Positions 1,909-57,888 of a stretch of 64,000 bases of DNA are shown one piece after another. The number at the start of each line of letters is the position of its first letter. The first letter of the stretch is position 1. Position numbers and translations under genes: made by a program. Source of the DNA: Asterias rubens (taxonomy: Eukaryota); the NCBI RefSeq assembly GCF_902459465.1, contig NC_047064.1:22010001-22074000 (forward strand), read 5' to 3'. The notes beneath the pieces are model-generated. The model ran no database searches, was not told the DNA's origin, and worked only from the letters and a program-made list of their open reading frames with translations.

Positions 1909-11319
<9,411 letters not shown>

Positions 11320-13554: not shown

Positions 13555-16500
13555 ATGTTCGGTAAATCTTTGACAACTGTCTTGCTGGGGTTCTTGGTGG
13601 GCTTCGTAGCCTCCCAGCAAGCGCAGGTCATGGTGGAGCAAGGTGCTCTCTTTGGTGAGACCAAGACATTCATGGAAAATGAGTTCATCAACGTCACCAA
13701 GAACATCAACGTCTTCAGGGGTGTGCCTTTTGCCGAGCCACCCGTTGGACCTCTGCGATTCGCGGCCCCGATGATGAAGGCTGGTTGGGGTGAGGGCGTT
13801 TGGAACGCTACCTACTTCAGAGATTCTTGCATTCAGTACAATACTGATACAAGATTTGATCTTCCTACTAGTGAGGACTGTCTGTATCTCAACATCTACG
13901 CACCAATGCCAGCACCAGTACGTATACCCTCTTTTGAGGTGTCAGTTAGGACACTTCGCAACCTGATCACTTCGTACCTTTTTATAAGACACTTCGTACC
14001 TTCTTACAAAGCACGTCATACCTCGTACTAAATCCGGATTTCTGCATTGTTTATGATTATTTTGTGCTTTGTGATCAGATGATTATATTCCTCAATAATT
14101 TAATGTTCGTTAAGATAAAAATTATTAATACATAATGAATTATAATTTTTATTTGAATATGTGAATGTCATTTTTCTTAATGTGAAATTAATATTTTGTA
14201 TAAGTTAATTACCGCCAAGACAACATTCTACCGCGGTCCTACTACTTGCCGTCAACTCGCCGACTTGCCGTCAACTCGCCGTCAACTCATTTTCGTGCCG
14301 TCAACTCATTAAATTTACATGAAAAATTTATAAATGGGACACGGAAGTGTTAAGTCTGTTAAGTAAAATGTATGAAGCTTTAGTGAAATTTGCGGGAAAA
14401 TCTAAAGTTAATACCGAAATCACTCTGTCTTTATAATCTCTGTACTTTGTAATAATTTGAAATGCCTGTGTTGTTCCATGGCATGGTTGTTTTCAATACA
14501 CAGTCTTAACTTTATTTACAGACAAAGGTATAACGCAATCTTGACTGAGAAACAATGTTGATCGAATACGACTTGTACAAAGACTAACCATTAACATAAA
14601 GTACAACGTCATCAAACCAACTGTAATCTATTCATATTTTTCAGACAGAGGGCCTCCCTGTTATGGTGTGGTTCCATGGCGGTGGCTTCACATCAGGCAG
14701 TGCCAATCTGGCAATTTTTAACGGCATGCCATTGGCTGCTGTGGGTGACGTCATTATCGTCACGGTCAACTCTCGTCTCGGCCTGTTTGGATACATGACT
14801 ACAGGTAAAGTCTTTTAGGTATCTTTCAATTATTTCCCGTAAAATCCATCACATGACGTCATGTGACGTTTAAAGACATTGGACACTATTGGTAACTGTC
14901 AACGACCAGTCTTCTCAGCCAATGCGTTAAAAAACAAACCATGTGAAAATTTGAGCTTTATTGGTCATCGAAGTTGGGAGATAATCTTGAAAGAAAAAAC
15001 ACCCTTTCCACACGCAGTTGTGCGCTTTCAGATGCTTGATTTCGAGACCTCAAATTCTAAATCTGAGGTCTCGATGAAAATTACTTCTTCCTAGAAAACT
15101 ATGTCACTTCAGAGGGAGCCATTTCTCACATTGTTTTATACTACCAACCTCATTACCAAGTAAGGTTTTCTGCTAATAATTATTTTGAGTAATTACCAAA
15201 AGTGTCCAATGCCTTTAACAGGTACAAAATAAAACTAACCACACGGCGTCATCGCGAGTACCACAGCTGCGGTAAGAGTGAAATTTTTAAAACTAATCAG
15301 ACTATAGACATTGAACACAGCAATTCCATTTTTTGTGAATACATAAAAAAACGCACCTCTCGCTCAATTTTTTTCTCTAGGCTTCTGTAATCGTTAGAGC
15401 TATAGTTTGTGCTAAGTAGGCGTGGCTTAGAGTGGAACTAGGCCACGCTTATGAACAGACATATTTGTTGTCCATGTTTTTATAAATAATAAATTGTATA
15501 TGTTATTATTTCAGATGACGAGGTAGTACCTGGTAACAATGGTGCCAAAGATCAGGTTATGGCTTTGAAATGGGTCCAGGAAAACATCGCAGGTATGCAT
15601 CTTGATTCATTTTATGATTATTTATGAAGAGTTTCTTTTAGTATATTTGTCCAAACAAATGATTTGCGGTTATCGAACAAGCAGAAAAATGGATTCCAAT
15701 CCGAAAGCTTCCTGATTGAACAGTTTCAACCAGAACCAAGTCTGCGGAGGTTTAAATCCTTCTGAAAATTGTGAATATCCCATTATCAAGATATCTTATT
15801 TCCATTGCCGCAATCAAAATAAGCCAGATTGATTCTTTTCAGAATGTTTTTCTTTTTTTCCTGCTTATAATACACTTAGTTACCTGTTCATGTTTGTTGT
15901 GTTGTCATTACAGCCTTCGAGAAAGATTCTGCTTGCTAGTTTCAGAGGGCAGGACCTCTTATTTTTGTATTTATATCATAGGTTTGTTTAGTTGTTTGCA
16001 ACAGCTAATTCTATTTTCTTATTGTGTCCTTTATGTGACAGCTTTCGGAGGTGACAGTAACCGGGTTACCATCTTTGGTCAAGGAACTGGAGCAGAAGGA
16101 GTTAATTTGATGATGCTCTCTGAGATGGCTACAGGGCTATTCAGTCAAGCTATTATGCAGGTGGGGAAAATGACGTCATTCAAATTATCCAATTAGTTGT
16201 CATTACAGACTAACTAACTTGCATGTCTCATGCATTATTCATTTCCGAGTCAAAAACAAAAAACATCTGCAAAGTGGTTGATTTTAGTATATTATGTATA
16301 CAAAGTTACAGTTCCTTATTGACTTAACAATTTCTTCAACTCCCTTAAATCTATATTACAATCTTTTGAACTAAATTTAACATTGATTTTACAAAAACAA
16401 TGTTGAAATAACAAGCATAATCAAACAAAATAACCCTAAATAAATAAATAAAAAAGCCTGGTACGGATTGAACAAATCAGTCATCGCAAGACCATGAAAA

Positions 16501-19500
16501 AGATAGCGCCAGTGTTAAAATTTGATTTGGATTATTTTGAATATGGGTTACTTTTATTTGATTGTGGCATGTCGTCGCTAAGCGGTTAATAGCACACCCA
16601 ACCTCCGGTGATTCAGCAGAGTGTCTGGGGTTCCAGTCCCGGTCATGACACTCGTGTCCTTGAGCGAGATACTGTATCAGATTTGGGTTGTCCTTGGAAT
16701 GGGACATAGAACCATAAACCGTATGGAGCTTACCACTTGGTAGTGCGCCTAAAAGAACCCACAACAGTTATCATGAAAGAGTAGGGGGCTAATCCCTTTG
16801 TTTCTGGTGCCTAAAGCAAGCACCCTTTCTTGCAGATTTCCTTAGAATTGTGAGCTACATGAGGCATCTTATCATTTATTTATGTCTTTACTTATTTTTC
16901 ATAGAGCGGGGCTGCTTTCTGGCCCTGGGACACTCAACTTCTCAAGCCCATCCTTCGAGGGGAAGCCTTTAGAGTTGGACAAGCACTTGGTTGCATGAGC
17001 ACAGAGAGCTCCTCTCTTGTTTCTTGTCTGCGCGAGGTCGAAGCCACTCAATTGTTAGCCAAAGCCGTGGAGGTAAGCAAAGCTTGTAAGATTAAAGAAT
17101 GTATGGATTATCATATTATTTCCATAAATCATGCCCACCATTTTCGTTCAACGCTTCGAGGTATTGCTTTATAAATCTGTTGTTATAAAGTATTATTTTC
17201 TTCCTTTTTTCGCAACCAAAAACCACTATTCTAGCTGCAAGTTCGATCAATATACGTTGATGACGGTGAATTCCTGGAAGCCAAGCCAGCCGAGCTGTAC
17301 GCCGCGGGGAAGTTCAACCCCGCCAAGGTTATCATGGGTACAAACGCTGACGATGGCTCGATTATACTCCTGAGCGAACCCATCATAGCTGAAAATTACT
17401 TCCTCTCTGAAACTCTCCCGTTCATCAATAGAGAAGACCTTGAGAATGGTCTTAGAACACAGCTTATAGAATACACTGGTAAGTCCTTCACTACAGACAA
17501 AGTGTGTAACTTTTGGCGACTTTAGAACTCTAGGTTGCAGCGTGCATAACGAGTAAATTTCCATTGACCTTTTTCACAAATACCCATTGCGCAAGCGTTA
17601 ACTGCCGAATGAGGAGCATGCATACAGGAATGCGTTTTGGCGGTCTTAACAAATGACTGTTTCGGTCACTGGCCAGTGGATAACCGATGGCAAGTTCGAC
17701 CGAAACAGTTATTGGTTACGACCGCAAAACGCAGCCCTGGTCTAGCAAGGAATGCCACCTGAGGGATAGCTAGACCAGCGCCATGACCCTTGCAATTATG
17801 AATTCACTATACAGACATGGCACCAGTCTGTGCTTTCTTCTAGCCTCGATTTGGTTGCAATGTTTTTAATTTGGGAAATATCAAGATGGCCAAACCACGG
17901 TAAAGGTCTATAGTCTGACGTATTAAATTCAATTTACCAAATAATTACCAATAATTACACAAACTTTTTAATTTTACCTTTGTACACTTACTGTCCCATC
18001 TTTTCATATAGCCAAACAGGACGGTAAAGTTGGCAGCAAATTGTGGATTATTCTCATTATATTTATTATACCATTTTATTTTTTATTTTTTTGAAAAGAA
18101 ATCCCGAAAGTCACTCTTATCCAACCATAACGTAGCATTTTATTTGATCTTGTTTTCAGGAGTGTCCAATCCGGAGCATTTGATAAACGCAATCGAAGCC
18201 ATGTATCTGGACTGGTCCCAAGCCGACAACGCAACCGCTGGTTTCGCCAGATCAGCAATGAATTTCGACACAGACTTCTTATTCGCCTGCCCGACCAACA
18301 AAGTGGCTCGCACCTACGCTGAAGCTGGTAATGATGTGTTTTTGTATGAGATGTCACACAAGCCAAGCGTCTCGATCTACGACAACATGGGCTACGGACC
18401 GGGTTGGTTGGGTGCCTCATACGCCGAGGAAATCATGTACATGTTCGGTGTACCTTTCGGCCCCGCTAGAACCCATTTTACGGAACTCCAACATGAGGAG
18501 AAGGAATTTTCCGTCAAAATGATGGAGTTCTGGACCAACTTTGCCAAGAATGGGTAAGTTAGAAGGTGAAAGGTGAAAGTGCTGTAGTTACAACATCAGT
18601 TTTTCATAAACCTCCACTAGGAGTGTCAAGTTGGATGGCGTGTTGGTAAAGACAGGGGTATAAACCATCGAGCAAACCCAACTGCCTTGTGCGAGCACAC
18701 GCTAAACAATGCCCATTGTTAACATGACCAAACAATCCAGCCTCGTTTTCACTGATTGCAGAAAAACAAGATGATAAAATGTCAACCATTCCGGTTTCAT
18801 CTTGTTTTGTTTCTGTCTGTACAAAATATCTGGAATTCAGACCTTACTGCCGTGCGATATAGAATAAATCAATTAGAGAATGTATAGCGAAACTGACAGT
18901 TAAACATTAGTGGGTAACTGGCCGTTTTCATGCATTTGTTAAGTGATAGTTATTGATGTCCGACATTGTGCATTCATCCACAGAAACCCCGGTGTAAAGA
19001 TGTCTGGCTTCCCACCTGTGTCAAGTGATGACTACTGGCCGAAGCTGACCATCCCAGGGTTGATGTACAAGGACCTCAACTTGGTCTTGACTGTGGATCG
19101 TGCCCTGAAGGCTAGAGAGTGCAACTTCATGAACAATTACTTGGTGCAGCTCCAGACAATGTTTGGTAAGGAGTGTTATTGGATACTTTTATTAACACTA
19201 CAGTAGATTTACCACGTACAATCAACGCCCAAAATGGCGCGTAATCTCTGAGCTAAGTGAACAATGGTAATTTACATAAGTCGGTTGCCACCTAGTGTTC
19301 AAAGGTATTACATTGACACAGTTCACACTTATCGTCTCAACAAATCTTTTGCATATGCAGTTGTGTCCGCCCCCGTGCAAAACCGCCCTTGTAGTAAATT
19401 AAAACACGTTTGCCTTTTTGTTTACAAGCTAACTAAGTGCATTTCATGAATGACATGGGAAATGTTCGGCCGTTGGGTATTCGCTGCAATCGTAAAATAC

Positions 19501-20129
19501 GTGAATATTCATGCTGCATTACGTAGGTTCAGTGCATGCACGCTCGCTTACGCGCGCACATACATGTACAGTCATGTACATGTCCACTGGACGGTTTTTG
19601 CATAGCCCCGGACACGATTGCATATGCAAAAGTGTCCGGAGCGGACAGTATTGCATGGCGGACACAATTGCATCTGACACCGGCGCCTCGAATAACGTTG
19701 TCGAATAATAGGGAGACTGACAGTGCAGGGTTGGATAGCTTTGTTGGCATATTTAATTTCGGAGGGAACGGGTTCAAATCTAGTTGTAAAAAAATTGTCT
19801 TTGTGTCAATTTACTCAGTCAGTTTCCCTCGTGTGTTTTTTTTTTGCTATGACCATACGTAAAATATCCTAATCTTTTTCCCACAAATTGTTGGGTTGAA
19901 TAGGTCCGGGTGGGATATTGACTGGGATCCCGACCTACCCACTCGGGATCCCGACCTTTCCCGAACTCTTGACTCCTCTTCAACGTCATTTACAATACTG
20001 TTTTTGTTTGTAGGTGCCTTGCCTGAAGTTGAGCGTGAATGGAAGCAGTCATACAGCACCTGGAAGTACGAAGATCTGGCTGACTGGAAGAATGAGTTCA
20101 ATCAGTATAAAGCGATCAGAGGCATGTAG
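13555..20129 (+). CDS. Esterase gene 2: secreted cholinesterase-like pseudoenzyme (catalytic triad lost) with WAT tail, ~607 aa, 9 coding exons
   Basis: Exons 13555-13917, 14645-14804, 15515-15592, 16042-16160, 16905-17072, 17235-17478, 18160-18553, 18984-19165, 20014-20129; GT-AG, 1824 nt, no stops or frameshifts. [21 protein letters not shown] present; GESAG>GQGTG, NADEG>NADDG, GATH>GASY. Confidence 0.9.
14870..15218 (+). mobile_element. MITE family A copy
   Basis: ttaaagacattggacactattgg ... aaaagtgtccaatgcctttaa. Confidence 0.85.
16566..16800 (+). mobile_element. Decayed tRNA-derived SINE; similar heads at ~53927-54056 and ~61485-61600
   Basis: A box gctaagcggttaatagcac, B-box-like ggttccagtccc, gtgtccttgagcgagatac. 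Confidence 0.65.
17565..17909 (+). mobile_element. MITE family C-related copy with a nested family H MITE at ~17628-17736
   Basis: gaccttttcacaaatac...gaatgagg.gcatgc [gaatgcgttttggcggtc...gaccgcaaaacgcagcc] tggtctag...aaaggtct. Confidence 0.65.
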
Positions 20130-20924
20130 ATCCTCGTTCCTCACGGGGACCGAAACACTGACCGGTCGATCATTGTGAGCCTTTTTGTTGGAGCATTAAC
20201 CCGTTTAGCATTTTGAATTTAAACTTTAACTTTAACTTAAACTTGGAATAATAACTTGAAAGATAACATGTTCTCCTCGAGTAGTAAAGTTACTGTGTAT
20301 ATCGACAGACCTAAAACAAATTGCGATTGGAAACACAAAAAACCCTCAACAATTCTGCTTGTGAATACATGGTGCCAGACTGAAGAAGATTTGTCCGTCC
20401 AAGGGTAGCAAATTTTCTAATAATAACCTTTATAAAGTGCGCCACCAGTAGTTTCCGAATTGACTGCTCTGTCATGCGCGGTGAACTGCCTTGAACTTGA
20501 AATGGTTTGAGCAAGGTGTTATACCTGATGACAAGTTTATATTTTTTTTACAATAAAATGTAAATCCACACTGTTTAATCATTTTTTTTAAATCAAACTA
20601 TTAGCTAGAACTTTTTAGGATTTTATCCGCCTTCAAACGCTGACTTTACTTTGTAACAGTATTTTGTAGAAGTTAAACGAAACCAATGTGTTATCTTCAG
20701 AAGAGGGCTGTGACTTGCTTGGATGTCCCGTATACTGCAATTCTTATAACTTCTTCTTATAAACTTTTTGTATATTATCAAGTTTGATAGAAAATGCAAT
20801 AAATAAACATAACCCCGAAGTGTTGAGTATTACTTTCAGTTGAGTATTTTTAATGGGAAAGGTGGGTGCTCTAATGCTTGATTGGTGATGTTCGACTATA
20901 TAACTTAAAATATAAATAATATCA

Positions 20925-22527: not shown

Positions 22528-29296
<6,769 letters not shown>

Positions 29297-31137: not shown

Positions 31138-41827
<10,690 letters not shown>

Positions 41828-43020
41828 ACCAGGTGGACAGGTCCAGGGATGCACGAACTATATGATTGCCACAAAAACTACTTGTGTGTGATATAGTTAG
41901 TCAGTTAGTCAGTTAGTGTTAATGAAAATAAAGAAACTTTGACTGAAATTGGCCGGAAAACTCTATACTAACGTGAACAAGAAGGCATTCGCAAATAATC
42001 TTAAACACAAGGAAATCAAATAATTTTAGGTTCTAAGTATTTTTCGCATGACATTACCTTGGTCTCGATGTTTAAAACTAAAACACGAATTCCGAGTACG
42101 TTTATTTTATTTGGGTTTAAATCGGATTGTGCGTCAGTTGACCCAGTTTCAGGTCAGTTACAAACCGTTTCCGTGTCATGATGACCACGAAACGGGTCAG
42201 GCCCCCTGCAGGACCGGAGTCAAGTATCAATTCCTTCATGTGAATTTAGAGTTTGAATTTACTTCTTATGTTGTTCAAGATGTAACGAACCCCATCAACA
42301 TCGCAAGATATTGATATTAGTATCGAGTGATTGTATTGAATTTTTATTATGAAATTTATTTTTTTAAATTTTTATTTTAAAAGCTCTTTTTACAGTAATT
42401 AGTTTTAGAAATATCTAGAGTTTGTGTGCAAATTACACTATATGCGAATAAATAATGTCAAATGTATTGTAGTTTAAAAAGTTTTAACAATTCATTGTAG
42501 AGTAAAAAGTTGTAATAAAAGATGATTGTGTGACTGTTATGTGATTGTGTTCGCAGATTATGGAAGTCATTTTGTAGGACTACTGTTCAATTTTCTCATA
42601 CCGAACCCAAAATTGAGTACAACAAATTCAGTTTGAACAAAATCTAGGTCAAAATGGAGCAAAATCAAAACTCCCAAACCTTGTACCATTATATTTGCTC
42701 AGTAATATTCAGAGAAGGCACAATTCAAATAATCAATTACCCATAGTGTTAAAATAGGGGAAAGCAATTTCTTTAAAAATACTACTTTAAGAAGTTTGCT
42801 TAATAACTTGTCTGAAGGGATCAGTGCAAAGCACCAATCGCCTGCAAAAACTTCACCACACAAGTTAAATGCCAACTTGTTTATGTCCTGACCCTTAAGG
42901 CATTATGCTTGGGGTAATAACACGAGACAATTTCCCCGGCCCAATGTGTCTTTTTGTATTGATGTGTTGAGTCTGATTACAAATCAATAAAAGTATGTGG
43001 AATATGTTGAACCTACAAAA

Positions 43021-43125
43021 GGAGTCTTCTGGAGTCTTCTGGAGTCTTCTGGAGTCTTCTGGAGTCTTCTGGAGTCTTCTGTAGTCTTCTGGAGTCTTCT
43101 GGAGTCTTCTGGAGTCTTCTGGAGT
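43021..43125 (+). repeat. Tandem 10-mer (GGAGTCTTCT) x ~10.5
   Basis: Ten copies (one GTAG variant) plus a partial copy. Confidence 0.95.
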
Positions 43126-44418
43126 TTTTAACGTGCCATGTACAAGACAGCATAAACTGGGTGAAATTTGCTTTAAGATTTTGTGTTGTGCTTTTTAATA
43201 ATAAAACTGCATAAACATTCTTAGAATAACTGGTTTTTCAGAAAGGTTAGAACACTCAGTACACTAAATATGAAAATTGCTGAAATATCCAAACACATTA
43301 TTTTTTATTGCTATCATTATTATTATTAATATATTTTTATTTTTTATTCTACCAACATTCAAACCAGAAGCAAGAATACAAACATTGCCACTACACTTCA
43401 TTTTCTATGGAGCTCTGAAAGTACCATCTGACTCATTGAGATCCCGAGATATTTTTCAGCAAGTTACGACTTAGCCCTAAATATATATTTCGACAACCTG
43501 ACGGCAGGATGTCGGCTTCCAGAGAAAATTTATATCGGGAAGTTGACATCTTAACTAAGGTGTCATTCCGAGACTACGTTCATGACGCCCATTCTGCAGT
43601 AAATTATCTCAGGGTCTCAACTGTTCGATGGCACTGCCAGAGCTCCGTATTTTTTTCAAAAAAAGGAAACGATCCGGACCCAATTTGGCTCTCCTTACCG
43701 TAGGCAAAAAATCGGCGTTTGCGAAAGTAGGGAATTATGTGCTTACTGCTAGCGTATTTCATGGCTTAGCACGGTATTTTGTCCCGTGTGCGTGCGTAAT
43801 CCACTGTCGTTATGCATTCTTCGCTTACAAAGCTAGCGCAGAAACTCGGCACTTGCACGTAAGCAGCGAATGGTGAGCGTAAGCGCAGAATTCGGCGGTA
43901 AGCAGAGCCGTGTTGTTGGGCCCAGATCAGCCTAAAGCAAACATTCTTCGATACAGCTCGGTCAATAAACATGGTATTCCACTATTGCCCTAAAACTAAT
44001 TAATGAAAATGTGTGCATGCACTGAGAAGAGGCTGCGCTTAGACCCGTGAGTACCAACCGTTCGAACAAGCGGTTCGGAATGCTAAATTCATTGTGAACT
44101 TTTCGAGTCCAATGGATTGTGTTCCAACCAAAATGGAGGTCGGTGACGTCAGCCTTGCCATGGATTGGATGCGGTGTTGAGATAAAAGGTAAGTGTTCAT
44201 CATGATGACACGTTAATACAAGAGATACAAAAGTCACCACTTTGCTAACATGCTATATGGCTTCTAATTGGACTTATATATCACATGTAATCATTTGAGT
44301 AAGACTCCCTAGGCTACAGGCAAAAAGAAGGGAGCTCATTGGCCCATCCTGTGCGCCGCACATACAAGGATGGACGTTCTCCATTGTTGCGTGACCGTTT
44401 TACCTCTAAGACGTCGGT

Positions 44419-44544
44419 GTGTTGAATTCAATGGTCTATTGCTATTTGTAGTGTTGAATTCAATGGTCTATTGCTATTTGTAGTGTTGAATTCAATGGTC
44501 TATTGCTATTTGTAGTGTTGAATTCAATGGTCTATTGCTATTTA
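44419..44544 (+). repeat. 32-bp minisatellite x ~4 (gtgttgaattcaatggtctattgctatttgta)
   Basis: Copies start at 44419, 44451, 44483, 44515; no spacers. Confidence 0.95.
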
Positions 44545-44738
44545 TACGAATGAACTATGAATGTTTGGATTTACAACTGCAGTCAAATACAAGCTGAAGC
44601 AATACTTATATTAAAAAAATAGTGAAAATATACAGTTACAATAATTGTCTTGATTTGGTGCACTGACAAAACATAATCATGTGCAATCACCAATAGAAAA
44701 GCTAACACTACATGTCACTTGTCTTGCCTTTGATTATT

Positions 44739-45479
44739 TTACAGTTCAAAGAAGGAGCAGCCCTCCATGTTCTTGAAATCAGTGACGTCAGCCTCCAGGC
44801 GGGATGCGTTGTTAAGCTGACATATCTTACCCTGCTTCCAGAGATTGAAGGAGTGGCATCTAGGCTCCGCCCAGCACGCCTGACCACACCCAATGACTCC
44901 CTTGGCTGTCAGGTTCTTGATGTCATGGTTGAGCAGACACTGGGATGTGAAGCGACCGTCATCGTCAGCTGCCAGGCAGTGTATGGGATGAGGGACGCGC
45001 ATCTCACAAGCGGCAAAATTGATATCCGAACAAAGGCGATCTACCCATTCACCATTTTGTTCTTGTCGCATTATGATGCAGTGCTCGTCTTAATCATCAT
45101 AATTGTTGTTATTCCAATTAGTGTAGTAAGAATCGACTTTCTTACCAGGACAGGACAGTTGTGAAGGATTGGTCAATTTTTTTTTGCACCCAATCCAAAG
45201 AAAAAAATCGGGGTCCATGAGACCCTTTTGTGTTCTCGATGCAGTCACTTCTCGCCAAATAAAATCTTGTTCTTTTTTAGATTCAGGCATAGCCATGGCG
45301 CTTCCAGGACGATCACACACCCTGAAGGCATCAGTCCAATTCATCTTCCGAGGTAGCAATATGTAACAGGAGTCTTGCCAAGTCAACCAGCCGGGAGGAC
45401 ACATGGCTTGAAGCCCCACAAAGAAAACGGCGAAAAGTAGCAAGAATGATTTCTTAATACAAGCTGTAAATACCAACAT
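44739..45479 (-). pseudogene. Intronless C-type lectin + PAN/apple gene, copy A, with one in-frame nonsense codon
   Basis: Track ORFs 45090-45479 and 44739-45071 share one frame; TAA at 45090-45092 aligns with AAA (Lys) in copy B. CPPGWLTWQDSCY, WIGC, NGEW..C...FAACE, then PAN-type C..AC....C.SFN...CQLN. Confidence 0.8.
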
Positions 45480-45650
45480 ACTGATATTATAAATTGTAGG
45501 TAATTTTCAAGTGGACAGTAAAATATGACAAATCAAAAGTCAGAAGCTCTCGTTTCTCAATTTAGTCTTTGAATGTAGCCAAGTTCAGCCTGATGAGCTA
45601 GTGCCGTCGTCACAATTTTGAAGATTGTGTGCCGAGTTGATCGCTTGTGA

Positions 45651-45657
45651 TTTTATA
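45651..45657 (-). promoter_or_regulatory. Candidate TATA box of lectin copy A (matching site at 48574-48580 in copy B)
   Basis: TATAAAA on the - strand ~170 bp upstream of each ATG, conserved in both duplicated flanks. Confidence 0.35.
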
Positions 45658-47657
45658 CAATGCATGCACCCGCAGTACGTCCGTTATAACAAAACAATAT
45701 AACAAAGGCCTAATTTTCCTTCTGACGCTAGGATGAGCAATTTGTTACCTACATCTCGTAATCCATAAAAAGACGTGGAATAAAATTACCTCATAATATA
45801 CTCTCCATTATTTACTCTTGGTTGCTAAGTTGCCAATTAGGGCCTACCTTTATCGCCATGGTGGTGTAAATTTATAATTCAGTTCGCAACTCATGGCTAA
45901 AACTGCTAAAAATAGAGCTAAAATTCAGACAAATTAATTGTAAGCAATAGGAAATGTTGCAGTGACAGTGCCGTCGTGCCTAAAGATGGAAGCTGGTTTG
46001 CAATTGTTGATACAGAAAGAAGGCAACATCTACTCTGAGACAACCTCGTTAAAATTGGTCCCCATTGTTTGAAAACAGAGTACTAGATTAAAATGATTCG
46101 GAAAATATTTGTTTCAGTCTGAAAGCACTGCTCAGGAAGTTGAAATAAGTATATTTATCTTTCCAATGTCGAAGGTCGGTAGCTAGCCCTGTCTTTACTA
46201 CAGATATTTTCATTGTGCCATAGTGTGTATACGACATGGTTTTTCTCCTATCAGAATGTTTGGACATGAAACCAGACTTTTTCACATCCAAACGCTCTTG
46301 CTTTGCTGACAATAGAACAGAAATCTTTAGTCTGCATACTGCATCTGTTTGGAACTCCTCGCCTGGTTCATTGTCCCTCAATCTTACAACAAAGACAGTT
46401 TAAGAAAGGAATATCGATGGCTGATACAAACATGCAAAGACAAATATGGTTTATTGTTTTGTCAGAAACCACATGTGCAAATCATCACTAATAACCGGGC
46501 TAACTAATGTAGATAACAGATGTCTTGACATGCCTTAACAGTATGAGATCATTATGAATTACGTACATCAGTAATTAACCGAAAAACCAGTAACTTTTAT
46601 TATAACAATAATTTAACTGTTAACATTCTTCATGATTGTCTACGTGACGGTTATGAAGACACCCCACAGAGTTTACTTATTTTTCCTTTAAATGTACTAT
46701 TTTCTTTCATTTGTAAACGTATTATTTACCTTACCTTTTATCCTTCCGCCAACTCAGTTCGTTTTAGAAACGTTTATTTATGCAAATCAACCTGTTAACA
46801 CTTGCGCCCTCGTATGCTTCACGTTCACATTTCACTCACTTTCAAATTATATTCAAGAGAGAACACACAACATAACGGACTCTGTTCTCTCCTATTTTCC
46901 AGAATAAATAATTGTGAACGGCAAAGCTATTCTCCTCAGTATCCCTTCTTATCGACTCTAACAACATCCTGGTCACATCTACATTAATACAACTAATATA
47001 ATAGTATCATTAATTCTAATTCAAACACAATGAAATTAAAGATGGAACCGATAACTTCTTGACAATGGATAACATTTATTTTGAACAAGAGATCAGTGAG
47101 ATTACTACAAAGGCTGAAATATCACGTGTAATGGTAGACCCATGACGTCACACACTAAAACAGCGCCCTCATAGAGGCAAAAAGAGACAGGTGCGTAAAG
47201 ACTAGACTGGTCCCTTGTCTTTCCGCAAGGATAAAGACAGGTACTTGTAGTTGATTTTCAGAACCAGTGATTTAAGTTGAAACAATGATTTCATTGGGTA
47301 AACGTGCGTTGACGTAAGCTTTACCCTGTTTGATTGGTCCGGGGTGATGTGGGTGCAGTTGACAAAACATCACCACGGTGTCGGACCAATGAAAACACAG
47401 ATATGGGACGCTTTGTACTGACTACACTGATATTAGTATGTTTAAAAATCAAATTTAATGTCAATTATTTACGCAGGTATTTGCAATTAAACTGTCTTTC
47501 GCCTCACTCAGATGGAACACGCAATTTCACTAAATGCCTTTGTTTTAGTGATGACCTACCAATTATTTTGAAGGAAAAAAACGAATGTTAAAAGAAAGAA
47601 TCTACTTTGAATTCTACTGAAAACTTGGTCATGCCCCTTTATACGTGGATGCTCATT

Positions 47658-48404
47658 TTAGAGTTCAACAGAGGAGCAGCCATCTATGTTCTTGAAATCA
47701 GTGACGTCCGCCTCCAGGCGGGATGCGTTGTTAAGCTGACATATCTTACCCTGCTTCCAGAGATTGAAGGAGTGGCATCGAGGCTCCGCCCAGCACGCCT
47801 GACCACACCCAATGACTCCCTTGGCTGTCAGGTTCTTGATGTCATGGTTGAGCAGACACTGGTATGTGAAGCGACCGTCATCGTCAGCTGCCAGGCAGTG
47901 TATGGGATGAGGGACGCGCATCTCACAAGCAGCAAAATGGGTAATGGAACAGTCTTGATCTGCCCATTTACCATTGTATATTTGTTGCATTCTGATGCAG
48001 TCCTCGTCTTTAGCATCGTAATAGCCTCTATACCAATTAGTGTAGTCAGAATCAACATTCTTACCAGGACATGATAGCTGTGAAGGATTGGTCTTTTCTT
48101 TTTTGCACCCAATCCAAATAACAATAAAGTCATTGGCATCCACGAGACTCTGATGTACACTCGATGTAGACATTTCTCGCCAAATAAAATCTTGTTCTGT
48201 TTGAGACTCAGGCATAGCAATGGCACTTCCAGGACGATCACAAGCCCTGAATGCATCAGTCCAATTCATCTTCTGAGGCAGTAAGATGTAACGGGAGTCT
48301 TGCAAAGTCACACAGCCGGGAGGACACATGGCTCGATTCCCAACAAAGAAAACGGCGAAAAATAGCAAGAATGATTTCTTTATACAAGCTGTAAATACCA
48401 ACAT
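47658..48404 (-). CDS. Intronless secreted C-type lectin domain + PAN/apple domain protein, copy B, 248 aa
   Basis: Single ORF: hydrophobic leader (SFLLFFAVFFVG), CTLD (MNWTDAFRAC, WIGC, C..M...NGKWAD.DC...FAACE), then PAN (CGQACWAEPRCHSFNL...CQLN). Confidence 0.88.
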   Translation of the reverse strand: MLVFTACIKKSFLLFFAVFFVGNRAMCPPGCVTLQDSRYILLPQKMNWTDAFRACDRPGSAIAMPESQTEQDFIWREMSTSSVHQSLVDANDFIVIWIGCKKEKTNPSQLSCPGKNVDSDYTNWYRGYYDAKDEDCIRMQQIYNGKWADQDCSITHFAACEMRVPHPIHCLAADDDGRFTYQCLLNHDIKNLTAKGVIGCGQACWAEPRCHSFNLWKQGKICQLNNASRLEADVTDFKNIDGCSSVEL

Positions 48405-49019
48405 ACTGGTATTTTAAATTGTATTCACTTTTCTAGTGTAAAGCAAAATGTGTTAAATTAAAAGTCAGAAGCTCTTTTTTCAATTCAGTCTTTGAATGTA
48501 GCCAAGTTCAGCCTGATACACTAGTGCGTTCAACACAATTTTGAAGATTGTGTGCCGTGTTGATCGCTATTGATTTTATACACTGCATGCATCCGCAGTT
48601 ATGTCCGTTATAACAAGGCCCCTAATGTTCTTAAGATGCTGGGATGATCAATGTTAACCTCAATCACGTTATCCACAAAGACGTGGATTAAAATGACCTT
48701 ATATTATACTACCCATACCCTTGGTTGCTATGTTTCCATCGACATGGCCGTGTGATTTTATAATTCAGGTCGCAAGTCATGGCTAAAAATTGTTACTAAT
48801 AGAGAAAATTCAGAACAAATGTAAGCATATTATAATATAAAATATGTTGCAATGACAGTGACGTCGTGCCGAAAGATGAAAGCTGGTGCTGCAAAAATCG
48901 ATCCTTCATTTTTTTTATGAAGGAATATAAAGGCAACATCTATGCCGCGACAACCTCGTTCAAATTGGTGCCTGTTGTTTGATAACAACGTACTGGTTTA
49001 ACATGATTGGACAACTATT

Positions 49020-49370
49020 TTTTGTTTCAGTCTGGCAGCACTGCTCAGAAAGTTTAAATTAGCATATTTGTCTTTCTAATGTCACATGTCTGCAGCCAGC
49101 CTCTGTCTTTACTACATATATTTTCATGGTAAAATGTGCCATGGTGTGTCCGACCTGGTTCCTCCTATCAGGATGTTGAGCATGAAACCAGACTTTCTGA
49201 TTCTTCTCATCCATTCACTCTCCCTTTCCTGAGATGTAGAACAAAGCGCCATACAAACAGCTTTATTTCACGTACTGCATATTATCTTTGGAACCCCCTG
49301 CCTGGTACATGTTTCCCTCGATCCTATTATCTAGACTTTTAGTGTTTTAAGAGGAATGATGATGGCAGGA
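49020..49370 (+). mobile_element. Old degenerate CR1/L2-group LINE 3' fragment upstream of lectin B (paralogous relic ~46130-46410 upstream of lectin A)
   Basis: Broken translations ..AASLCLYYIYFHG.. and HPFTL..RT....SFISRTA..LWNPLP...FP..Y resemble non-LTR RT C-termini; both copies decayed. Confidence 0.55.
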
Positions 49371-49536
49371 GTTGAGATAAAAGCAGTATAAACATGCAAA
49401 GATAAGTCAACTCGTTCTATTGGCAGAAACCACACGTAAACATTTCCTTTGAAATCCGTGCTAATTAATATATGAAGATAACCAAGTTCCTGACAAGCCT
49501 TGACATTTTAAATTCCGTACATCATGAATGAGCTAA

Positions 49537-49664
49537 GGCCGTGTCCGAAATGGCGACTTCGGCTACAGCTACGGCTAGATCGCGCGCGTCTGCTATCCTT
49601 CAACACTGGTAGACGCGCTGATCTAGACGTAGCTGTAGCCGAAGTCGTCGTTTCGGACACGGCC
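49537..49664. mobile_element. Small PIF/Harbinger-type MITE with TAA target duplication
   Basis: taa|ggccgtgtccgaaa...tttcggacacggcc|taa; near-palindromic; related decayed copy at ~4700-4820. Confidence 0.8.
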
Positions 49665-50319
49665 TAATACAAATACTTTTTATTAACAATTTGTTATTTT
49701 ATTAACAATTTGCATGATAGTGCGCTTGTTCTTTGTTATGTGCCATCGAAGCAAAAATGCAGTAAATGTGAACGCACAATCTGCTGATCAGCGCACAAAC
49801 TGCGAGCGTCATGTGCGTCATGATTAAATGGCGCGTTTACTTTTTTTTAATACGGCAATCAAGTCGAAGTTACGGTGTTTGTAGCGCGGACGTACGCGAG
49901 TGGACAGTTGCGTACGGATACGCACACGCTGAATGTAAAATAATCGCGGCAATGTGTGTTCTCTTAAAATTCCGAATTCACGCAACACACCAAACATGTC
50001 TGCGCTCAGGGTGGCTTCAAAACGCAGAGCAAGTTAGCGCTCTAGTCAATATATATAGCTCTATGCGCAGCATCCATCCAGTTCAAGCTGTTTTCAAATA
50101 ATGGTGCTGTGTTGATTTCTATGTCAAGGAATATTACAAAGCACAAAGGGCGGCATTGTCTGCTTTATTCCCAATTCGTTGCTAGGTGAAGTATTGGTTA
50201 AGGCTTGGCCCACAGAATTTCTTGGCCTTTCCTTTGTTTGCGTAAAAACACTGTTCTAATGTTTAGACTGTTACCCTTCACACGACGCAAACAGTTGGTT
50301 TGCCATCTAAAAGAGAAGG

Positions 50320-50510
50320 GGTTCGCCCCGGTGTTCGTGGCTGTGGCTGCTTAATGCGCCTTGTAAACCCGTATAGGGTGCCAACTAATTGGGTTTCAGA
50401 ATTCATCACTGCAATAACCTTTCTGAACGTTTGTATATTATACTCAGCGCCTTGAGTACTTTGTTTGGTAGATACGTGTGCTATATAAGACTTCGATATT
50501 ATTATATTAT
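50320..50510 (+). mobile_element. 3' half of a second SINE type
   Basis: aagagaaggggttcgccccggtgttc... cagcgccttgag...gtgctatataagac then (tat)n tail. Confidence 0.6.
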
Positions 50511-50716
50511 TAAAGGTTAGTTATAAAAACTGCCCTTTGCGCCAGTGATTTTGTGGAGTGCTAAGCTCTAGCTTTTACACGCGTCTGTCGCGCTCTTTAT
50601 TTCGGGAGTCAATTCCAGATGTTTGAAGCGGTTTAAAAAAACTGCGTTGCGTAAAGTGTGCATCAATCTATTAACCCACTGAGTATGCCATTATATCCTA
50701 GTAAAGGATAAATGCG

Positions 50717-51068
50717 TAATATTTATAATATTTGAGTTTATATAGCGCTTTTTCACTCCCGAATGGGTGTCTCAAAGCGCTTCAAATTATTACCCCTGGT
50801 CACTGGGCCTTAATTCACTCCTTAAACCATCTCAGCTCCCTGGGGAGTATACAGCCTCGTGCAACAAATGCGCTACTCGGCTAAATCAATCACAAGAACC
50901 ATCTCTGCCCTCACAGGTCCCCATTTACCCCTGGGTCGAGAGAAGCAAAAATGGTTAAGTGTCTTGCTCAGGGACACAAGTGTCACGACCGGGATTCGAA
51001 CCCACACACTGCTGAACAGAATCAGCAGAGCTTGAATTCGGTGCTCTTAACCGCTCGGCCACGACACC
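50717..51068 (-). mobile_element. Full-length tRNA-derived SINE with an L2-like 3' tail
   Basis: - strand: gtcgtggccgagcggttaagagcacc (A box) ... ggttcgaatccc (B box), gtgtccctgagcaagacacttaacc, central domain, tail aagcgctttgagacac...aagcgctatataaa. Confidence 0.85.
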
Positions 51069-51206
51069 CCTCTTTTTACAGGTTTGTTTAAAGGGCGGTT
51101 GCTTTAATAACATTATAATTATGTCCATGTTATGGCGTCATCCTCTTTTTACAGGTTTGTTTAAAGGGCGGTTGCTTTAATAACATTATAATTATGTCCA
51201 TGTTAT
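51069..51206 (+). repeat. ~65-bp direct duplication next to the SINE head
   Basis: cctctttttacaggtttgtttaaagggcggttgctttaataacattataattatgtccatgttat occurs twice. Confidence 0.9.
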
Positions 51207-51553
51207 CTTCATAAGTCTATAACTGCAGGACTTTGCGCACTAACATTTACATTGAAGTAAGATTGTTGCTTTGAGAGGCGTTATGAACGTTTGTAACATG
51301 ACTCATCTTTGTGTGATGTCCTGCTCACTGTACTGCGTCAAAGCCAGTCAGTCAACAAGGAAAATATTACCAAGGGCTTAATTATGCAAGCGGTTAGTTT
51401 CAATGGGTGCAATGGATTTGAAGGAAACAGTAAAATCAAAGTGCAAATTTACTACACTATCTGTGGTGCGGCTGTAATCAATTTTAAACTAGTGCCGTTT
51501 TTAAGCAATGGCCAATGATTAACCAATGGCCAATAAGTAACCATTGGCCATTA

Positions 51554-51710
51554 GTGGGGATCCTTGCCATTAAGTGCTTTGTGGACAATGAGCATCAGCT
51601 TGAAGATGATTCGTTGAGAGATAGGGAGCCATTGTAGTTGTTTCAGAATGGGGGTGATGAAACACGATTTCTTAGACAGAGTCACAATGCGGGCAAGATT
51701 TGAGAGTCAA
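51554..51710 (-). mobile_element. Short L2-type LINE fragment
   Basis: - strand reads ARIVTLSKKSCFITPILKQLQWLPISQRIIFKLMLIVHKALNGKDP, homologous to the L2 ORF at 25166-26086. Confidence 0.75.
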
Positions 51711-52250
51711 ATAAAAGAAGACAGTGTAAAAGGTGTAGCTGAGGTTGTTGACTTCCAACTTAAGGTATTTTATTGTCATTAATAATTGTCCTGTTTGCCG
51801 AGCGATGGACACTATGTCAAGGGGTGTAGGGGGACCCCTGGGGTCAAATTAAGTAGAGAATAAAAGTTCAAGAGTCATTAATTTTAAGTATTTTTGAATA
51901 GCAATTTGCACTGTATACTACGGGATTGATAACCTTATTCGGCCATGGTTCTGCACACACACCTTGCGTCAGCAATTATGTAACCTTTCAAAGCCCAAAA
52001 ATATGTGGATAAGTCTGCTGTGTACTTTGTATTCACATGTAAATTAAATATCGATGGCCCGACCCCTTCCTGCGCACTCCTACGGATGTATGCTTTACTG
52101 GCTGACTGCACTGCAACGTTTTGGTGTGTAAACCTTGGCGGCTTATGTTGTAAAAAGGTTAAGCCAGTTTTGTAAGGAAACTATCACTGATCATACTATC
52201 ACCGACTAGCACTGAATCTGGCCCAGTTTGCAACCCTCAATATACTCAAT

Positions 52251-57888
<5,638 letters not shown>

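Follow-up and report, generated by a model that had tools for sequence, protein, structure and literature searches.

The gene cluster and the catalytic positions of gene 2

The stretch of DNA analysed here, which we call the window, comprises 64,000 nucleotides of the Asterias rubens genome (contig NC_047064.1, positions 22,010,001 to 22,074,000), and it contains six tandem cholinesterase-like genes, all on the + strand (Table 1). The subject of this report is the second of them, gene 2, whose coding sequence of 1824 nt is divided among nine exons and encodes 607 amino acids plus the stop codon, with every intron of the GT-AG type. The translation is identical to RefSeq XP_033625047.1 (P0152), which is named 'cholinesterase 1-like [Asterias rubens]', and an exact-match splice mapping of the protein reproduces the identical exon set. 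This bears out the nine clean exons and the open frame that a first-pass annotation, made by a model from the letters of the window, had read here. The same annotation had held that the intron positions match those of the neighbours, and gene 3 is indeed divided into nine exons in the same way, their lengths being 378/160/78/119/177/241/394/182/119 against 363/160/78/119/168/244/394/182/116 in gene 2.

The results show that gene 2 belongs to the type-B carboxylesterase/cholinesterase fold, an alpha/beta-hydrolase with three conserved disulfides. Against Pfam PF00135 (COesterase), for which the curated cut-off is 27 bits, the full protein scores 430.2 bits; its residues 22-557 cover positions 2-514 of the 515 in the profile, and exon 1 scanned alone already gives 87 bits. 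An AlphaFold2 (AF2) model built from a 59-sequence alignment has a mean predicted local distance difference test score (pLDDT) of 91.1 and a predicted template modelling score (pTM) of 0.88, and its best PDB matches found by Foldseek are AChE, BChE and CES2, with template modelling (TM) scores of about 0.88 normalised to the target. The protein has six cysteines only (92, 109, 270, 281, 421 and 555), aligned with those of the three canonical disulfides, together with three N-x-S/T sites, the HGGGF motif and a hydrophobic, signal-peptide-like N-terminus. Of these, the signal peptide, the disulfide cysteines and HGGGF had been listed as retained by the first-pass annotation.

At the catalytic columns the picture is a different one. 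Gene 2 has Gly215, Asp336 and Tyr465 where nearly all relatives have Ser, Glu and His (alignments with 57-63 relatives, the largest of 64 sequences), and Tyr465 is aligned to the catalytic His of Anopheles AChE. The motifs GQGTG, NADDG and GASY, noticed earlier in exons 4, 6 and 7, are thus all found at the catalytic positions. GESAG, D-E and His are all present in genes 1, 3, 4, 5 and 6 as read from tblastn segments, which for genes 1, 4 and 5 stand in place of full gene models. The codons for E-S-A are GAG AGT GCT in genes 1 and 3-6 and CAA GGA ACT in gene 2, which makes five base changes in three adjacent codons; exon 4 also carries the replacements of Ala216 by Thr and of Ser220 by Gly.

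The deviations are concentrated around the active site. In 57 relatives, 104 columns reach a conservation of at least 85%. Gene 2 deviates at seven of these (Y164S, S215G, A216T, S220G, E336D, H465Y and W558M), five of which are triad residues or neighbours in the nucleophile elbow, and it keeps the remaining 97. Its nearest triad-intact paralogues deviate at one to five of the same columns. The positions that define the fold are preserved and the catalytic ones are lost, and the Ser-Glu/Asp-His triad of an active serine esterase is absent. The three replacements do not weigh equally, however. Asp at the acid position, as well as Gln or Gly before the nucleophile, also occurs in relatives that keep both Ser and His (P0161, P0169, P0004 and P0014), so that the change from Glu to Asp is not inactivating by itself, and only the replacements of Ser and His are clearly disabling. 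Of the 'three targeted losses' described at first, two therefore stand as disabling.

Table 1. Genes, exons of gene 2 and tail motifs in the window
Feature	Position	Strand	Description
Gene 1	about 3642-9819	+	tblastn segments
Gene 2	13555-20129	+	nine-exon model
Gene 2 exon 1	13555-13917	+	aa 1-121; start codon; signal-peptide-like hydrophobic N-terminus aa 1-20; disulfide pair Cys92/Cys109
Gene 2 exon 2	14645-14804	+	aa 122-174; oxyanion-hole HGGGF kept; NSRL for family NYRL (Tyr164 to Ser)
Gene 2 exon 3	15515-15592	+	aa 175-200
Gene 2 exon 4	16042-16160	+	aa 201-240; elbow GQGTG vs GESAG; Gly215 codon GGA 16083-16085
Gene 2 exon 5	16905-17072	+	aa 241-296; second disulfide pair Cys270/Cys281
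Gene 2 exon 6	17235-17478	+	aa 297-377; acid position NADDG; Asp336 codon GAT 17352-17354; in spliced contig L001
Gene 2 exon 7	18160-18553	+	aa 378-508; GASY; Tyr465 codon TAC 18420-18422; Cys421; in contigs L001 and L004
Gene 2 exon 8	18984-19165	+	aa 509-569; Cys555; Met558 in place of conserved family Trp
Gene 2 exon 9	20014-20129	+	aa 570-607 plus stop; T-peptide/WAT-like amphipathic tail, W-x6-W-x7-W, without Cys; predicted helix 574-605
Gene 2 3' untranslated region	20130-20729 at least	+	contig L001 collinear and 100% identical over 20013-20729
Gene 3	22528-29296	+	same nine-exon layout as gene 2
Gene 4	about 31138-41821	+	tblastn segments
Gene 5	about 52251-57885	+	tblastn segments
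Gene 6	from about 59963	+	runs off window end
W-x6-W-x7-W	20040-20087	+	end of gene 2, separate last exon
W-x6-W-x7-W	29204-29251	+	end of gene 3, separate last exon
W-x6-W-x7-W	41738-41785	+	end of gene 4, separate last exon
W-x6-W-x7-W	57799-57846	+	end of gene 5, separate last exon

Origin, selection and transcription

Two trees are used to place gene 2, a broad quick one of 64 sequences and a focused careful one of 32. In the broad tree, the echinoderm clade containing gene 2 is separate from the vertebrate and nematode clade of AChE and BChE. The first-pass annotation had proposed a tree with the cholinesterases and the neuroligins, and our trees answer the former part of this proposal, the neuroligins lying outside the sequence set of both. 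In the focused tree, gene 2 falls in an Asterias-only clade (ultrafast bootstrap 100, Shimodaira-Hasegawa-like approximate likelihood ratio test 99) as sister to gene 4 (96/91). Its stem branch is the longest of the clade and measures 0.68 changes per column, where gene 4 has 0.34. Gene 2 is thus a tandem duplicate born within the Asterias lineage, and since it is nested in an Asterias-only clade its catalytic loss is lineage-local, in accordance with the independent origin suggested before. Outside Asterias, a search with the full protein finds nothing closer than 53% identity. A second search with the C-terminal 313 amino acids returns only gene 2's own cluster, which is weak evidence of absence given its only 579 candidates.

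The orthologue in Asterias amurensis (XP_071789196.1, locus L002) has nine exons and three replacements identical to those of gene 2. Since Gly, Asp and Tyr are common to both species, the loss is older than their split. Between the two coding sequences 27 of 1824 nucleotides and 14 amino acids differ, with no indel. The ratio of nonsynonymous to synonymous substitution rates (dN/dS) is 0.30 by NG86, 0.30 by LWL85, 0.36 by YN00 and 0.66 by the maximum likelihood (ML) method of Biopython, and for gene 3, whose triad is intact, these methods yield 0.43-0.61.

The neutral yardstick is given by the introns of genes 2 and 3, intron 6 of gene 2 included, of which 7.3 kb align well between the two species; the divergence there amounts to 3.0% substitutions, with 0.77 indel events per 100 bp. 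At these rates the coding sequence of gene 2 would be expected to carry about 55 substitutions, 41 amino acid changes and 14 indels, against the 27, 14 and 0 observed. In 2000 neutral simulations 7.5% of the sequences are free of stop codons, and none has 14 or fewer amino acid changes. In addition, 14 of the 27 changes are nonsynonymous where 78% are expected from the site counts (binomial test, P = 0.002). Gene 2 is therefore under purifying selection at least since the split of A. rubens and A. amurensis, and neutral decay from before the split is excluded, despite the short span and the small counts. The view that selection acts on a frame free of damage is confirmed in this comparison.

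Gene 2 is also transcribed and spliced, as is shown by two intron-less contigs and by RNA runs. Contig L001 (Joint Genome Institute (JGI) sample 3300032517, 1543 nt) is 100% identical to the window, with exons 6-7-8-9 joined and followed by the 3' untranslated region (UTR). Contig L004 (JGI sample 3300032520) joins exons 7-8-9; its exon 7 is 99.7% identical and contains one single-base gap, and over exons 8-9 and on into the 3' UTR the identity is 100%. In both contigs the junctions fall where the gene model puts them, given that the ends of BLAST matches are ambiguous by one to two bases. Five RNA runs (X1-X5) contain 0.20-0.24 of the sampled words of 14600-20150, close to the exon fraction of about 0.26 in this interval, and DNA-type runs contain 0.40-0.66. 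The spliced expression named at first as a check is thus observed.

Overall, 15 RNA runs contain gene 2, and 13 of them are marine or seawater metatranscriptomes. Gene 3 (22528-29296) is found in only two RNA runs, with shares of 0.09-0.12 and with zero overlap with the 15 of gene 2. Because the RNA of gene 2 comes mostly from marine metatranscriptomes, we infer expression in the planktonic stage, and the gene probably acts mainly there, in the embryo or larva, largely independent of gene 3. As a side observation, the catalytically dead copy is apparently more widely detected in plankton samples than the triad-intact gene 3.

Known relatives, the C-terminal tail and the role of gene 2

Cholinesterase folds without the catalytic serine are already known. 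Among the non-catalytic cholinesterase-like proteins are neuroligins, gliotactin, neurotactin, glutactin and thyroglobulin with its ChEL domain (PMC5943944), and like gene 2 they have the fold without a functional triad, which they use for binding or assembly. These families are old and widely conserved, most of them are anchored in the membrane or embedded in a larger protein, and a T peptide is described for none of them (PMC5943944). Gene 2 differs from them in being young, lineage-restricted and soluble, nested among triad-intact esterases of its own genome and provided with a WAT-like tail. No transmembrane anchor is found after its esterase-like domain, the tail being hydrophilic and ending 38 residues past the domain. 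When exon 7 is compared with the PDB, the neuroligin matches are weaker than the AChE matches. Nested as it is in an Asterias-only clade, gene 2 does not look like a neuroligin-type orthologue.

Compared with vertebrate AChE (T isoform) and BChE, gene 2 shares the fold (31-33% identity at the TM of about 0.88 given above), the three disulfides and the oxyanion-hole glycines. Its tail likewise lies on a separate last exon, is related to the WAT/T-peptide and ends in a WKNEF-type motif. Unlike them, it has neither the Ser nor the His of the triad, its omega loop is short and lacks the choline-binding Trp, and it is placed outside the AChE/BChE clade; its tail has tryptophans spaced 7+8 instead of 7+7 and lacks the C-terminal Cys. 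The closest known proteins are the echinoderm 'cholinesterase 1-like' esterases, with 46-53% identity in starfish and about 41% for sea urchin cholinesterase 1. They share with gene 2 the nine-exon layout (gene 3), the signal-peptide-like start and the tail, but have Ser, Glu and His where gene 2 has Gly, Asp and Tyr, and the stem of gene 2 is about twice as long. Literature searches on XP_033625047.1, Asterias cholinesterase, the echinoderm WAT and pseudoenzyme carboxylesterases return nothing on gene 2.

The reading that we favour, with a probability of about 0.6, is that gene 2 encodes a secreted, soluble protein of the cholinesterase/carboxylesterase fold without ester hydrolysis, which is kept by selection for a non-catalytic job. 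It would be unable to hydrolyse esters because the nucleophile and the general base are both gone. Tandem duplication within the Asterias lineage gave rise to gene 2, and in a period of roughly twofold faster change of the protein the catalytic residues and their near neighbours were replaced, with 97 of the 104 conserved positions kept. Purifying selection has acted at least since the two Asterias species separated. The protein may now bind rather than cleave: its pocket, which is retained, could take up a small ester-like ligand, or its surface could contact a partner protein.

Several points weigh against this reading. The binding role is something that we purely infer, and the planktonic role is drawn from the origin of the RNA samples, staged samples not being its basis. 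Selection is seen over a short span only (dS about 0.03) and from 27 substitutions, and the Biopython estimate of dN/dS is as high as 0.66. Exon 4, with the codon of Gly215, lies outside contigs L001 and L004, so its support at the RNA level consists of word shares only. Finally, the orthologue is found only within Asterias, though annotated proteins of other forcipulatid starfish are scarce.

The tail of gene 2 leads to the first of the alternatives. Against Pfam PF08674 (AChE_tetra), whose curated cut-off is 25, exon 9 scores 26.4 bits by itself and 20.0 bits as part of the full protein, and T-peptide-like tails are family-wide among the echinoderm members. Every starfish tail of this type has the 7+8 spacing, the interval from the second to the third Trp being longer by one residue, and the spacing is 7+7 in sea urchin, sea cucumber and vertebrates. 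Starfish tails are also without the terminal Cys (in gene 2 there is none after residue 555) that is present in sea urchin, sea cucumber, crinoid (Anneissia) and vertebrate tails. From its sequence, homology of the gene 2 tail to the T peptide is well supported, and the amphipathic helix predicted there probably makes the protein an oligomer. The earlier statement that gene 2 keeps its tetramerisation tail thus holds for the homology and for the separate last exon, whereas the function in a tetramer is putative, the 7+7 spacing and the Cys being absent.

With such a tail, gene 2 may be a dead regulatory subunit, which co-assembles with the products of genes 3-5 via the WAT-like tail and/or the four-helix dimer interface and dilutes, localises or stabilises their activity. 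We regard this as unlikely, though it is the most serious competitor of the non-catalytic binding role. In its support, W-x6-W-x7-W on a separate last exon ends each of genes 2, 3, 4 and 5, and the + strand of the window has exactly these four matches. The tail of gene 2 is identical in the two Asterias species and is predicted by AF2 to be helical, and the WAT domains of vertebrates form tetramers around a peptide rich in proline (PMC5943944, PMC8518539). The 15 RNA runs of gene 2 and the two of gene 3, the only pair of genes compared in this way, are however disjoint. The extra residue between the second and third Trp speaks against such an assembly too, as does the missing terminal Cys, which in vertebrates forms the inter-subunit disulfide. 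Nor do we know of a proline-rich partner in starfish.

A bolder form of the idea, somewhat more doubtful again, is that the tails of genes 2-5 form mix-and-match oligomers in which the dead gene 2 would set the stoichiometry, location or stability, or would dock active esterases to a proline-rich anchor. If true, a quaternary system of the cholinesterase type would have found a second use beyond cholinergic signalling, and would include a pseudoenzyme as its own regulator.

It is improbable in our view that gene 2 is still an enzyme with a non-canonical site, in which Thr216 or another residue takes over with altered chemistry or as a very slow hydrolase. A hydroxyl residue does follow the nucleophile position in two independent Ser-less starfish copies (GQGTG in gene 2 and GVGSG in P0162 of Patiria miniata), and the oxyanion-hole glycines are retained. 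Against this, the His serving as general base is replaced by Tyr, and Thr216 as the nucleophile would put Gln at position -2 of an elbow of the form small-x-Nu-x-small.

Still less probable is a transcribed, unprocessed pseudogene, recently dead and with its frame not yet broken. The longest stem of the clade and the three replaced hallmark residues could be taken that way, but the replacements predate the species split, since when there have been 0 indels against about 14 and 14 amino acid changes against about 41. The dN/dS of about 0.3 is not above that of the intact gene 3, and 97 of the 104 columns and the six cysteines are kept. An artefact of assembly or annotation at the triad codons, in favour of which nothing was found, is hardly credible, as the same residues occur in the independent assembly of A. 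amurensis, and Asp336 and Tyr465 also in two environmental RNA-derived contigs.

If gene 2 is a binding protein, as we favour, its interest lies in its age and surroundings. The non-catalytic cholinesterase folds described so far are ancient and have settled roles, while this dead copy adjoins triad-intact siblings and its loss is traceable to a few codons. It would thus be a compact natural experiment in turning an esterase into a binding protein, and it may give a handle on the role of T-peptide-like tails in enzymes other than cholinesterases. The name 'cholinesterase 1-like' in RefSeq is no evidence of enzyme activity.

Neighbouring paralogues and other starfish copies

The omega loop between the first two cysteines (13828-13881 in gene 2) is about 10 residues shorter in genes 2, 3, 5 and 6 than in AChE and BChE and has no Trp, and such a short loop lacking the choline-binding Trp is seen in all cluster genes and echinoderm relatives examined. 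Judged by these residues, the family is probably not one of true cholinesterases, despite the RefSeq names. Because of the missing Trp and of the placement outside the AChE/BChE clade, we call the neighbours triad-intact esterases, with a putative activity. The 'active paralogues' of the first-pass annotation thus have intact triads in genes 1 and 3-6, but their rank as cholinesterases is doubtful.

Gene 1 (3636-9819) is far more divergent, with 30-56% identity to gene 2 over tblastn segments, and keeps GESAG, D-E and His. No WAT-like tail exon of it is found within the window, and its N-terminal exon was not located. The RefSeq protein of gene 4 (P0166, 492 amino acids) begins at a Met just upstream of exon 2 (33097), and a good exon 1 with a signal-peptide-like start is present at 31138-31512, so that the annotation looks N-terminally truncated. 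Genes 4 and 5 are separated by about 10 kb (41822-52250) in which no esterase-like segment is seen. In intron 4 of gene 2, a transfer RNA (tRNA) scan of a stretch resembling a short interspersed element (SINE) finds no tRNA.

The nucleophile is also lost in other starfish copies of the family. P0162 of Patiria miniata has the GVGSG elbow and keeps Glu and His, its oxyanion motif being degraded to HSGS. In P0174/P0175 of the same species, Ala takes the place of Ser and Asn that of His, and the WAT-like tail gives way to a hydrophobic, transmembrane-like segment with a basic stretch behind it. A single old loss of Ser common to gene 2 and P0162 was considered as well. A clade of the two is rejected on the focused data set by the approximately unbiased (AU) test (p = 0.0006) and is not rejected in the broad quick tree (AU p = 0.21); this group had been picked with the first tree in view, and the topology could be distorted by gene conversion within tandem arrays. 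The tandem array of P0162 also has a sibling copy that is 83% identical over the nucleophile exon and still reads GESAG. Given the focused rejection and this sibling, the losses in gene 2 and P0162 are taken as independent. The nucleophile has thus been lost at least three times independently in the starfish family, namely in gene 2, in P0162 and in P0174/P0175. Such repeated loss suggests that the non-catalytic use of the fold is easily reached and repeatedly favoured.

The tandem array of this family in Patiria miniata lies at JADOBP010000028.1 (L003:1-8557), where RefSeq fuses several copies into one model of 2562 amino acids. The architecture of P0174/P0175 is neuroligin-like and has arisen inside the starfish esterase family. 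P0171 of Patiria has the same type of C-terminus, but keeps Ser and His.

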